Positions 22,761 through 27,954 of a DNA stretch of 64,000 nucleotides are shown here, in pieces; the first letter of the stretch is position 1; every line of letters starts with the position of its first letter. This DNA comes from Oopsacas minuta (taxonomy: Eukaryota; Animalia; Porifera): positions 310,001-374,000 of the forward strand of contig JAKMXF010000365.1 in NCBI GenBank assembly GCA_024704765.1, given 5' to 3'. The translations under genes and the position numbers were made by a program. A model generated the notes under the pieces. That model was not told where the DNA came from and did not search any database. It saw nothing but the letters and a program-made list of their open reading frames with translations.

Positions 22761-24098
22761 ATGTCCGACAAGCCTACAAACTCTCTCTCTAATGACCTGA
22801 CGGATCCATCCGATACAGCTGACTCTACTCCCTCCTACCTACTAGCAGCTAATGCTATACATCACCTTAGATTATTCCATGAGAGTATGAGGGAGCTGGG
22901 GAAATATTCTAAACTGAATATTATGCTAAATGACAATCCTCTGGTATCTGATACTACCTCAACTGATGACGTATTGGAGAGAGAATCCACATTCTCTATG
23001 CAGATATCTCCTTCAGGGATCACGTTATCATTACCAGATGCTAATGTACTCTCATTAGAGCCTAGTCCTGAACAGCTAGCTTCCTTACGTCCTATCCTAT
23101 TCAATAATCCTTTCTTGTCTGACTGTCTAATCTCTATCAAAGATGAGTCTATGACCTATTATTGTCATAGAGTTTATCTAAGCGAGGAGAGTGAATACTT
23201 CAGCGCAATGTTCCGTCCCTCCTACTCTGAGAGTGGGAAGAAAGAGGTAGAGATATCTCTCGAGCATCCTGAGATGTTTGAAGAAGCCTTATGCTACTTT
23301 TATAAAGGTAGTATCTCAGATAAACTCGTGTGTACAGGGAGATGGAGAGGATCAATTGATTCATATTTCCAACTAATCTGGGTAGCTAACTATCTGCAAG
23401 CATCTAAACTATTAACATCTCTCACTAACTTATTCGAAGTAAAATTCTCTAGCTCTCCTCTATTCAATTCAGAGTACATGACATTCTCTCTCTTCCAATC
23501 AGTTATAACATCATGTCGTCACAGAATGGGCCCCAGGATTCATACAATAGGATCTCGTGTAGATCCACAATGCTGGTTACGTAGCAAATATAGCTCCAAC
23601 AGAACAGGCTCTAGGTTCGAATACGCTAAGCGAATGCGTCGTATTATGAGCCGTAGCACTAGTAGCAGTCTAAGTAGTATGAGTCGTAGCCCAGACTGGA
23701 GGTTACCCTTTCATTCTAATGACAGCCCTCTCAGAAGTCGGAGTCGCTCTGTCAGTACAGACCCAAACAGATATATACCCACGATAGCATCTGAATTAGA
23801 CAGCAGTATGTTAGATAGCTCAGAAATATTTGAGGACAGTTCTCACTCTGTATATTCAAACTCTAGCATTCTACAGACTACATTCTCTTATGCTGAGAAT
23901 AGTAATAGGAATAACTCAAGGCTTGGGGGAGGAGCGGATGAATGTAAGGAGGTATTAGAGTGGGCTAGTGCAGAGAATATTACAGGAGAACTATTGGATT
24001 CTGATGTAGTTAATGTTATCAAGAGCTTCCCAGGAGCTGTGCAGAGAGCCGTAGACCCTTACGGACTGTTGAGCAAGACCAAGGGGAAGTATAATTAA
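22761..24098 (+). CDS. BTB/POZ domain protein with a Ser/Arg-rich insert, 445 aa
   Basis: SDCLISIK...YYCHRVYLSEESEYFSAMF...EISLEHPEMFEEALCYFY is a canonical BTB core. Confidence 0.85.
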   Translation: MSDKPTNSLSNDLTDPSDTADSTPSYLLAANAIHHLRLFHESMRELGKYSKLNIMLNDNPLVSDTTSTDDVLERESTFSMQISPSGITLSLPDANVLSLEPSPEQLASLRPILFNNPFLSDCLISIKDESMTYYCHRVYLSEESEYFSAMFRPSYSESGKKEVEISLEHPEMFEEALCYFYKGSISDKLVCTGRWRGSIDSYFQLIWVANYLQASKLLTSLTNLFEVKFSSSPLFNSEYMTFSLFQSVITSCRHRMGPRIHTIGSRVDPQCWLRSKYSSNRTGSRFEYAKRMRRIMSRSTSSSLSSMSRSPDWRLPFHSNDSPLRSRSRSVSTDPNRYIPTIASELDSSMLDSSEIFEDSSHSVYSNSSILQTTFSYAENSNRNNSRLGGGADECKEVLEWASAENITGELLDSDVVNVIKSFPGAVQRAVDPYGLLSKTKGKYN

Positions 24099-24223: not shown

Positions 24224-25362
24224 ATGTTCGGTCTAAGAAGATTATCACAAGGACAGATATTCACCCCCAGACTTACTCTATGCACCCTGAGAGCTCAACA
24301 CACACTCCCAGATCTCCCTTACCCCTACGAGTCTCTAGAGCCTCATATCAGTGCTGAAATAATGAGGATACATCACACTAAGCACCATGCTACCTATGTT
24401 AAGAACCTCAATGCAGCAGAGCAGAAGATCAATACTGCTGTAGATGCTGGTATATACTACAATATCCATAGTTACATAGTACATACGTTAGTACATAAAC
24501 TGATGTAATAGGACCTAACAATACATACTTGGTGTTGCTAATAATAGTTGATTATGTTGCTATCTATTTAGGAGATCTTTCAGGCATAATAGCTCTACAA
24601 GGAGCAGTCAAATTCAATGGAGGAGGACACATAAATCACTCTATATTCTGGAGTAACCTCTCTCCTAATGGAGGAGGAGAGCCTCAGGGTAATCTATAAT
24701 TAAATAAAAGTATAACCAATAAATTTTTTTTGTAACTTCTAAGGTGATTTGAGAGATGCTATAAACAAGGAATTTGGTTCATTCTCAGACTTCCAATCTA
24801 AATTTGTTGCAGCAGCTACTGGTGTACAGGGATCAGGATGGAGCTGGCTAGTTAGTGATAATTATAATCTGTATTATTACAATCCTTTAAGCTTTATAAT
24901 TATAATCAAACATTAATAAGCCAGTGAACAATTCGTGTATTAGCATGGCTAGGATTCTGTTGATAGTTATTCTATCACCAGCCAGATTCCATGCTATAGT
25001 ACAAATATCTCTGCAAACTAACATTATTTCCTTTGAAATGGTGTTCTGATGCTTTGATAAATTAAATAAAAAATATAAACCTTTCGTAGGGATATAATCG
25101 TGATCAGAAGAGGCTACAAATTGCCAGCTGTCCTAATCAAGATCCTCTTCAAGCTACAACAGGTATAGCATGTCTTGATATATCCTATAATTCAATGGAT
25201 TATATTTATACTTCTCCAGGTCTCATTCCGTTACTAGGGATAGATGTATGGGAACATGCGTACTACTTACAGTACAAGAACGTACGTCCTGGCTACCTCA
25301 AGGCTATATGGAATGTGATTAATTGGAACAATATATCTGAGAGATTACTTCAAGTGAAATAG
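24224..25362 (+). CDS. SOD2: Mitochondrial Mn superoxide dismutase, 221 aa; exons 24224-24449, 24572-24688, 24744-24850, 25090-25162, 25220-25362
   Basis: [31 protein letters not shown] and [11 protein letters not shown], plus an Arg-rich presequence. All introns are GT-AG and the exons sum to 666 nt. Confidence 0.97.
24942..25068 (+). ncRNA. Candidate box H/ACA snoRNA in SOD2 intron 3
   Basis: Hairpin 1: AGCATGG/CCATGCT lower stem, 8+7-nt pocket, 10-bp upper stem with one mismatch, and an ANANNA box (ATAGTA, 24996-25001) 14 nt from the pocket top. Hairpin 2: 11-bp AACATTATTTC/GAAATGGTGTT stem. No canonical terminal ACA (only ATA/AAA). Confidence 0.55.
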
Positions 25363-25867
25363 CTCTAATATCTACAAGCGATTCTCAGAATAGATTTCCT
25401 ATTAGTAAATAACAAATCATCTTAATTAGCGTATTTTGTACGAAGTTTGTGACCCAATGATAACACAAATAATATCACTTTTAGTAAACCGCTTTCCAAT
25501 CTATACATTTAATACACTGCCCCACTATCTCTTGTATACCTATAGTCGGGATATTAATGAACATTTTCAAAATTATCGCTCCGTGTCATACATGTCCTGC
25601 TTATTATACAAATAATACAAGTCACAAGAAGTGTAACAACAATCTCCTCACATAACAATTGAATGTAATTTATAAACAATCTACAAAGTAAAAGATGGAA
25701 ATTTAAAAACTAAAATTTGATTATACCAGATAATAACACCACCTGACTGAACACCATAACAATCTATGTATGTACAACTTGTTAGTTAACAGCAGAATGT
25801 GTACAATCACTAAACTATACCATGCAAGGTGTGAGTACGATTAAACTAAAAGCTTTCAATGAGAATA

Positions 25868-27954
25868 TCAAACAACGTATTTTCCGTGTATTTTAGGCTG
25901 AAAAGTTGGTTGAGGTTGGGGTTGAGGTTGAGGTTGAGTAGGAGGTGCCCGATTAGGGGCTGAGTGTAATAGTCCGGGTCTAGGAGCATTGGAGGTACGG
26001 GGGAGAGGGACTGGGCCTTGGGAGGAGGAAGGAGAATATGTGGGCGTAGTAGATACAGCTGGATATGCCTGTGGCTGTGGGGGAACGTAGGTGTAAGGAG
26101 TGTCAGGGGGTATTCTATCAGGTTTAGCTTTAACCTTTGGTTTAGCTACGATAGGTACTGGAGGTTTGTTAGCAGAATGTTCTGAGAATGTCTGATCATC
26201 GTTATTATATGAATCTCCGTTAGATGGAACTACATGTGAAAGAGGAGGAGATCGACGAGGGCTCTTTGGTGGTTTAACCTTCTTAATTTCTGCGTATTGT
26301 GTGTTCTTAGTTTCAGAAATATCTGGACTGCTTACTGACCAGTTAGAAGTATTGAAATATTGCTGGTAGTTCTCAATAAAGCTCTCTACAATACGAGAGG
26401 CTAGACTGGTATGAGTTGGATTAGCTCCTCCCTCTCCAGCAGGCCATAGAATATTTGGTGCTATAACAATAGCTATATTGGAAGAAGTCATCTTATTCTG
26501 TTCAGAGTACTTCTTTAATTCACTCAGGAAATCTATAAGAAATCTAAAGTTAGAGAAGTTAGCAGGAGGTAGTTGATCGAGTACATTGAATAGAGCTTGT
26601 TGTCTATCAGTTGGCTTATCAATCTGTGCTGCTCGCATCCATTCATTAAAGAAATCATAAGTTAACAGAGGTTCAGGTAACTCTCGTAGATACGTTTTGA
26701 GGAGAGAAGCTATGGTATGTGGGTCAGCTTGATGAGTACAAAAGTACGCACAAGTACCTACCCCAGCGTCCAGTGATGCCTTAAGATGTTTGGTCTTAGC
26801 AGTACCTCCTGTCTTCCTGAGAAGACCCTCAGTGTCTAAGAAATCATAAGTCCGTAGATACGTCACACACTCGTCTAGTACTACTGATATTTTACGATTA
26901 GTTACTCTCAAATGCTCCTCTAGCGGTGTACCAAATACAGGTCGGATAGGAAAGTTATCAATGTTCTTGTTAAGACATGGCATAACACTCTCAATACTCT
27001 CTAGACATTTCCTATGATATTCTAACTGTCTCTCCATCATAGATCTGTATATGTTAGCGTGTTCTGTCTGTTTGCTAAGGAATATTAGTAGAGTACATGC
27101 ATATTCATCTTGAGTTTGCTCAAACTTCGTACAGGTTTCATCAAACTCAAATGTAGCTGAATCTAGTTTGCCTAAGTTAGTCGCTGATCCGTTTTGCAGT
27201 TGTAACTTCTCCATAGACATCAACTTATTACGAGCAGCATCCATGTCTAATCGAGAATTTCGCAATTTCTTCCGAGACTTCTCCAGTAAGTGAACATCTC
27301 TTTCAAGCAGATCGTTACAAGGCTTCACTACCTGTTGGAATGAAAGAATAAGTTCTGAACTAAGAAATGAAAGAATCAATTCTTTTGATAAGCTATTAAT
27401 TATCTAACAGAGCTTCAATGTAATATGCCATATGAGTATTGAATGAAGCCCGGACGCTATACCTAATTCGGAAATATATAGAGATTCTAAGCATTCGAAG
27501 TGGCAATTGAAATATAATTGTTGGATTATTCCTGAATACTTACTTGTACATCTAGACCCAGCTCATAATCTGCCTGGTTAGTAGCCAGAGTATGCTGGAC
27601 ATTAGAACAAATATCAAGAGTTTTGGATACAATTGATCCTTTAGTTTGAGGATACAGCCTCTCTATGTCATCAAACTCTCCGTGAATTCGAGCTGCACAT
27701 TCTTGCATGTTATTAGCCAGTGATGTAGCAGGGAGTTTATTCCTTCTCTTCTCGTGAGTAGAACCACTGCCTTGATAGAGAGAAGGTACTTTAGATGACG
27801 TCATCTGGAAAGCTTTCTTTATCCCATCAACACTGTTACCTAACGTCTCAATATCATTATGTAGCTCATCAGTCTTGTTACGTAATCCTATATTTTCATT
27901 AGCGGCCTGTTGTATGCGGCGGAATTGTTTGGAAACAGAGCTAACGCTAGACAT
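25868..27954 (-). CDS. BAR-RhoGAP (ARHGAP17/ARHGAP44/SH3BP1 family) with a Pro-rich tail; intron 27543-27332
   Basis: KQFRRIQQAANE start, RLDMDAAR BAR segment, VFGTPLEEHL, EGLLRKTG, LKTYLRELPEPLLT and NKMTSSNIAIVIAPNILW RhoGAP motifs; QPQPQP tail. Confidence 0.9.

Follow-up and report, generated by a model that had tools for sequence, protein, structure and literature searches.

Canonical eukaryotic H/ACA RNAs share a hairpin-hinge-hairpin-tail layout, and the spacing from pocket to box is 13–16 nt (PMC5249026). For their guide function, the measured minimum of pairing between guide and target is 8 bp (PMC6049503). Box sequence is not the same in all lineages, as AGA boxes are functional in Leishmania and in trypanosomes (PMC5249026). 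The described guide that is closest to the element reported here is SNORA15 (also ACA15; Rfam family RF00398), which guides position 1367 of 18S rRNA and has CCT6A as its host gene (PMC6466398).

The snoRNAs of sponges are poorly characterized (PMC3412847). The paper on the genome of the glass sponge Oopsacas minuta gave 365 scaffolds, ~61 Mb and 36% G+C, and makes no mention of snoRNAs (PMC10280926). In the assembly used in this study (61.46 Mb, 365 contigs, ~37% G+C) we analyzed a stretch of 64 kb, positions 310,001 to 374,000 of contig JAKMXF010000365.1, which is referred to here as the window. An intron in the window holds an element of ~123 nt whose best reading, and in our view the probable one, is a SNORA15-like intronic H/ACA guide for U1439 of the sponge 18S rRNA (the equivalent of human 18S U1367) with an orphan second hairpin.

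Host Gene and Genomic Context

The host of the element is a Mn/Fe superoxide dismutase (Mn-SOD) gene on the + strand (Table 1). When its exons were searched singly against Pfam, exons 1 and 2 matched Sod_Fe_N, and exons 3 and 5 matched Sod_Fe_C; exon 4 alone, as a piece of 24 aa, had no Pfam match. Exon 3 was also recovered by tblastn in five relatives, and their orthologous introns (at loci L008–L012) start with GT and end with AG in all cases. Just upstream of the SOD gene is a single-exon BTB gene (22761–24098) with five orthologues in ENA assemblies at 58–72% identity, and the gene order BTB, SOD, RhoGAP is kept at the loci of the same five relatives. A sixth relative was reached through a search with SOD exon 1.

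During this comparison, two additional features of the relatives' loci were noted. In the five relatives, SOD and RhoGAP are separated by a gene of ~480 aa (L008:9475–10914, L009:9881–11317, L010:8685–10145, L011:9488–10927, and L012:10375–11820), for which faint or weak matches to NHL-repeat Pfam families were found in four, with none on record for L010. The interval between SOD and RhoGAP in the window is only ~500 bp (25366–25867), so this gene is absent there in O. minuta. At L009:9557–9664 there is a near-perfect palindromic hairpin of ~105 nt that matches plant miRNA families on both strands (MIR5565, E 5e-5), and which resembles a small inverted-repeat element more than a miRNA.

Table 1. 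Positions in the window of the predicted H/ACA-type RNA, its parts, and the surrounding intron and exons.
Feature	Position	Strand	Details
Mn-SOD exon 3, upstream of host intron	24744..24850	+	translation of 24746-24850 matches Sod_Fe_C positions 5-38, E 6.3e-10
Host intron, SOD exon 3/exon 4	24851..25089	+	239 nt, GT...AG; boundaries read from the sequence
Whole predicted H/ACA-type snoRNA, hairpin-hinge-hairpin-tail	24942..25064	+	~123 nt; from fold, RF00398 match, model R1 and conservation; 3' end placed 3 nt after the box
Hairpin 1 lower stem, 5' side	24942..24948	+	pairs with 24989-24995, 7 pairs
Hairpin 1 pocket, 5' strand CUAGGAUU	24949..24956	+	
Hairpin 1 upper stem and loop	24957..24981	+	stem 24957-24966 / 24972-24981, 10 positions, one mismatch
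Hairpin 1 pocket, 3' strand CCAGAUU	24982..24988	+	
Hairpin 1 lower stem, 3' side	24989..24995	+	pairs with 24942-24948
H box AUAGUA (fits ANANNA)	24996..25001	+	exactly 14 nt after upper stem
Hairpin 2	25008..25057	+	interrupted lower stem 25008-25010 / 25055-25057 and 25013-25014 / 25051-25052
Hairpin 2 pocket strands	25015-25020 and 25045-25050	+	upper stem 25021-25044
ACA-box position	25059..25061	+	reads AAA in the window; 14 nt after hairpin 2 upper stem
Mn-SOD exon 4, downstream of host intron	25090..25162	+	tblastn 79-88% identity in five relatives

Fold and Conservation of the Element

The minimum free energy (MFE) fold of the + strand consists of two hairpins at −38.8 kcal/mol (z = −4.67), and none of 200 shuffled sequences folded as well. 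The hairpin-hinge-hairpin-tail layout that defines the class was found in this MFE fold and in the RNAalifold consensus, which returned the same helices as our named pairs, and it is further borne out by pairing and covariation across species. An RNA from the minus strand was considered and rejected, as its fold is weaker (z = −3.61), it is without boxes, and it would be antisense to the host gene. Taken together with the conservation and box spacing described below, the fold makes the element in our view very probably a genuine H/ACA-type RNA. The initial annotation of the window had described a two-hairpin H/ACA-like element here, with the same two pocket strands in hairpin 1 and an H box 14 nt from the top of the pocket, and all of these features were recovered exactly where it had placed them. 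It had also pointed out two weaknesses, namely that the element has no canonical ACA and that it ends close to the 3′ splice site, and both are real.

The genome has one copy of the element, for which model R1 gives 127 bits. One weaker R1 match of 19.3 bits, on the minus strand in a RhoGAP intron (27399–27499 of the window), was set aside, as its fold was no better than those of shuffled sequences (z = 0.25).

The element was also detected by blastn in six other glass-sponge assemblies (E 1e-15 to 1e-36), and in all five of the relatives whose exons were mapped it resides in the same SOD intron, between exons 3 and 4. It forms an island of conservation: identity to the window is 0.87 in hairpin 1 and 0.77 in hairpin 2, relative to 0.20 in the hinge and 0.46–0.51 in the intron flanks. 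In the six-sequence alignment, 90.9% of the cells at the 33 named pairs are paired, versus 29–47% when the partners were slid, and there are compensatory changes at five pairs, a level that was reached by only 3 of 500 shuffles. The lower stem of hairpin 1 is paired in 100% of cells across species, with one compensatory change from G-C to A-U and three wobble changes, and its upper stem has compensatory changes at two pairs. Helices 3 and 4, which form hairpin 2, are 88–89% paired with one compensatory change each.

The unpaired bases of the hairpin 1 pocket are similarly constrained. Its 5′ strand, CUAGGAUU, is invariant in six of the seven species, the exception being L012 with AAGGAUU. In the 3′ strand CCAGA is invariant, and positions 6–7 vary (UU, GU, GA, or AU).

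No homologue was found outside of the glass sponges, either by model R1 at four SOD loci that are more distant and were reached through the exon-1 search (L031–L034) or by a pattern scan of metagenomes for the core of hairpin 1, with a pattern that excluded a vertebrate-type pocket. The scan produced seven matches, which were rejected as bacterial chance matches since their contigs were all high in G+C (0.57–0.61) and they were without H/ACA features.

Boxes and Their Distance from the Pockets

In all seven species, an invariant U-A-N-A comes right after each hairpin, exactly 14 nt past the upper stem, and the alignment columns are free of gaps. Both hairpins thus have a spacing that falls within the canonical 13–16 nt. 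At the H box, A-N-A is invariant across the seven species, and the sixth A is present in only two (the window and L011). At the ACA position, the sequence is ACA in L008 and L012, AUA in L009, AGA in L010 and L011, and AAA both in L030 and in the window. The two outer A residues of this box do not vary, and neither does the surrounding U-A-N-A-U, so that among the seven glass sponges the middle base takes all four possible values. The lack of an ACA at the 3′ end of the element in the window, where there is AAA and, 2 nt upstream, AUA, is explained by this variation in the aligned box column.

The element has much in common with canonical eukaryotic H/ACA RNAs, including the layout, the pockets, the box spacing, pairing of at least 8 bp, and its location within an intron. 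It differs from them in that its H box is mostly A-N-A only and in the four values of its ACA middle base. The AGA of two of the sponge orthologues (L010 and L011) is shared with the H/ACA-like RNAs of trypanosomatids, although those have a single hairpin and no H box, whereas the sponge RNA has two hairpins.

The degenerate boxes, together with the fact that in the window only ~25 nt separate the element from the 3′ splice site (25089), could be taken to indicate that it is not an RNA gene at all, but rather a conserved intronic structure with a splicing or regulatory role, or a pair of hairpins that looks like an H/ACA RNA. We consider this very improbable. Conservation in seven species includes compensatory changes, the pocket strands are invariant, and the rulers to the two invariant ANA motifs are exactly 14 nt. 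In addition, the match to SNORA15 described below is specific. The position relative to the 3′ splice site also argues against such a role: among species, the element begins 75–91 nt from the 5′ splice site and ends ~24–218 nt from the 3′ splice site, a spread which shows that it is not tied to the latter. Since the spacing ranges up to 218 nt in relatives, its closeness to the 3′ splice site is peculiar to O. minuta.

Relationship to SNORA15

Within the 64-kb window no Rfam family reached its gathering score. When matches were instead judged by E-value across 24400–25500, which follows the Rfam check that the initial annotation had proposed, SNORA15 (RF00398) was the only family to match the element over its full length, at 24943–25062 (model positions 1–137, 29.8 bits, E 0.0034). 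A genome-wide search with RF00398 returned this locus as its only match in 61 Mb (E 0.044). The family was also matched by the most distant orthologue, L012, at 25.1 bits, and by L008 at 15.5 bits with hairpin 1 alone. All of these scores, including that of the window, are below the gathering threshold of 47 bits for RF00398; formal membership of the family is thus not reached, and for that reason we labelled the element “SNORA15-like”.

The resemblance to SNORA15 extends to many details. Both RNAs are intronic and have two hairpins, with the guide pocket in the 5′ hairpin and a second hairpin without a known target. In hairpin 1 they have an identical lower stem of 6 bp (GCAUGG / CCAUGC), the same first 3 bp at the base of the upper stem (CUG / CAG), CCAGA in the 3′ strand of the pocket, and A-N-A right after the stem with the 14-nt spacing. 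The 5′ hairpin pocket of the sponge RNA is, like that of SNORA15, complementary to the 18S site GUCUGG-UU-AAUUC that contains the U1367 equivalent. The identities in the lower stem, in CUG / CAG and in A-N-A are in bases that are not dictated by pairing to the target.

There are also differences between the two besides the low score. The 5′ strand of the sponge pocket is CUAGGAUU, whereas the family consensus is cuGAAUA. The 3′ strand forms 5–6 bp with the target in the sponge, compared to 7 bp in the family, whose consensus CCAGACA is the complement of the UGUCUGG that precedes the target U. Hairpin 2 has no recognizable sequence similarity to that of SNORA15 and was not alignable, the hosts differ (Mn-SOD versus CCT6A), and the box at the ACA position is variable in the sponges (ACA, AUA, AGA, AAA). 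On balance, these sequence comparisons suggest that the element and vertebrate SNORA15 are probably orthologous, or at least equivalent in function.

Candidate Targets of Hairpin 1

The pocket of hairpin 1 was scanned against every U in the host 18S, 5.8S, and 28S rRNAs and in U1, U2, U4, U5, and U6, a total of 1,898 U positions. The geometry required the 3′ strand to pair upstream of the target, the target U and the next base to be unpaired, and the 5′ strand to pair downstream. Two sites tied as the best, 18S U1439 and 18S U8, each with 11 bp of which two are G-U; the next best had 9 bp. Both are above the 8-bp minimum noted for guides. The pairing at U1439 is 6+5 bp (upstream + downstream) with a duplex energy of −9.4 to −10.5 kcal/mol, and 5+5 of these pairs use bases that are conserved in the seven species. 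That at U8 is 4+7 bp with −11.7 kcal/mol, and 4+6 use conserved bases. The U1439 site reads GAUUUGUCUGG-UU-AAUUCCG in the host, with GUCUGG-UU-AAUUCC present in all three 18S copies, and all three rDNA copies that were found begin with UACCUGGUUGAUCCUGCC. One of the 18S copies (L003, C354:55148–57138) is divergent, scoring 1648 bits versus 1688–1705 for the other two (L001 and L002), and has several differences within its first 60 nt. Both candidate target sites are intact in this copy, which is possibly a variant or decaying rDNA unit.

The initial annotation had proposed that hairpin 1 guides the conversion of 18S U8 to pseudouridine, or has a role as a folding chaperone, and several of its premises hold. 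The 5′ end of the host 18S is as it had assumed, and CCAG with CUGG and UAGGAUU with GAUCCUG do pair as described, with two G-U pairs and with U8 and U9 unpaired. The scan over rRNAs and snRNAs that it recommended placed U8 jointly first among the 1,898 positions. It had also said that the proposal would fall if a better target existed elsewhere, and what the scan found was an equal one, U1439. The H/ACA-type guide RNA and its complementarity to U8 are thus supported; that hairpin 1 serves U8, or acts there as a chaperone, is not the reading we prefer, although the tie does not refute it.

The two strands of the pocket differ in the site that they favor. The 3′ strand, CCAGAUU, can form 5–6 bp with (G)UCUGG at U1439 or 4 bp with CUGG at U8, and its invariant fifth base, A, pairs with a U at the former and faces a C at the latter. 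The 5′ strand can form 5 bp with AAUUC at U1439 or 7 bp with GAUCCUG at U8. Considered in detail, its AGGAUU forms five Watson-Crick pairs and one G-U on GAUCCU at U8, and on AAUUCC at U1439 it forms 5 bp, including one G-U, followed by an A-C mismatch. In other words, the 3′ strand suits U1439 better and the 5′ strand suits U8 better.

Pairing of 11 bp is by itself weak evidence for a target. This is because 19% of shuffled pockets had an 11-bp site among the RNAs scanned, and 1.8% had two. Furthermore, the sequences around U8 and U1439 are near-repeats, both following CUGGUU-(A/G)AU-(U/C)C. Of the simulated guides that were built with 5+5 bp on U1439, 36% reached at least 10 bp on U8 and 17% at least 11 bp; in the reverse direction, 33% of guides built on U8 reached at least 10 bp on U1439. 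A match to U8 is thus fairly often expected as a by-product of a U1367-type guide and does not in itself argue for a new target. Any predictor of H/ACA targets will tend to report both of these sites for one guide.

With the scan tied, the choice between the sites is decided by evidence from outside it, namely that the one known family related to the element has the U1439-equivalent site as its target. We therefore favor U1439, which, as judged from the sequence comparisons, is probably the target of hairpin 1. Use of U8 instead of U1439, or in addition to it, appears unlikely to us. It would mean that a SNORA15-derived pocket was retuned in glass sponges to bind the 18S 5′ end (CUGG-UU-GAUCCUG), for pseudouridylation of U8 or for holding the helix-1/central-pseudoknot strand in early assembly. 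There are observations in keeping with that possibility, as the U8 duplex has the slightly better energy (unconstrained), none of the seven species has lost its pairing (4+7, with 4+6 in L012), and two positions of the 5′ strand are Watson-Crick for U8 and wobble or mismatched for U1439. However, the fifth base of the 3′ strand, the invariant A, does not pair at the U8 site, which leaves only 4 bp on that side. To our knowledge, no pseudouridine has been reported in the first ~30 nt of 18S rRNA in the eukaryotes that have been mapped, and we know of no guide or pseudouridine at 18S U8 in any eukaryote. The 5′ segment of 18S is also bound early by U3 snoRNA, which likewise counts against U8. 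Pockets that serve two sites would not be without precedent, since pockets tolerate slightly different substrates (PMC6049503) and dual-capacity loops have been described (PMC8763049).

If U1439 is the target, the general H/ACA mechanism suggests the following sequence of events. The Mn-SOD pre-mRNA would be spliced, and the intron would be trimmed back to the RNA, which would be protected by dyskerin, Nop10, Nhp2, and Gar1. The hairpin 1 pocket would then bind pre-18S rRNA, CCAGA(U) pairing with (G)UCUGG and GGAUU with AAUUC, so that U1439, at a distance of 14 nt from the H box, would be presented to dyskerin and converted to pseudouridine. Expression, processing, protein binding, and modification are in this way inferred for the predicted guide RNA by analogy with known H/ACA RNAs.

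Hairpin 2

The pocket of hairpin 2 is also highly conserved, and its AACUA (25016–25020) and CUGAU (25046–25050), which do not vary in the seven species, are the most invariant unpaired bases of the element. No convincing target for this pocket was found in three pocket registers among the rRNAs, the snRNAs, and the available 5′ ETS, ITS1, and ITS2. Three candidate sites were considered and rejected. Pairing with 28S U4019, which we take to lie in a variable region, is 5+5 bp with two G-U and is partly lost in species that have other bases at the variable positions of the pocket. Pairing with U54 of U2 is one-sided (6+0 bp), and that with U320 of the 5′ ETS (6+4 bp) includes three G-U.

A UGAG that resembles a CAB box was observed near the tip of hairpin 2 (25034–25037) in five of the seven species; the window has UGAA there, and L009 has UGGG. 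A scaRNA reading was nevertheless rejected, as the UGAG falls largely within the stem rather than the loop, and both the window and L009 depart from it.

These observations raise the alternative that the element is a genuine H/ACA RNA whose function is elsewhere, for instance through another target of hairpin 2 (a noncoding RNA, a pre-rRNA spacer, or an mRNA), as a Cajal-body RNA acting on snRNAs, or in a role other than that of a guide. An invariant hairpin 2 pocket without a good match in rRNA or snRNA would fit with this, as would the CAB-like UGAG and the weak statistics of hairpin 1 pairing when these are taken alone. We nonetheless consider it quite unlikely. Hairpin 1 is the most conserved part of the element and matches both a known guide family and the target of that family, no snRNA site exceeded 6 bp, and the best spacer matches of hairpin 2 are G-U rich and in sequence that is not conserved. 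We therefore retain the SNORA15-like reading and treat hairpin 2 as an orphan that is needed for RNP assembly, although another target for it is possible.

Implications

Overall, our data suggest that the element in the O. minuta Mn-SOD intron is most likely an ordinary guide of a known type. The tied predictions that arose from near-repeat rRNA sites are a caution for predicting targets from pairing alone, and the variation of the boxes among seven species is a natural experiment on how much change H/ACA boxes tolerate. If the element is a relative of SNORA15, then this guide, and probably the pseudouridine at the position of human U1367 in 18S rRNA, would date to the base of the animals, and the guide would have moved between host genes, its host being Mn-SOD in this sponge and CCT6A in humans.
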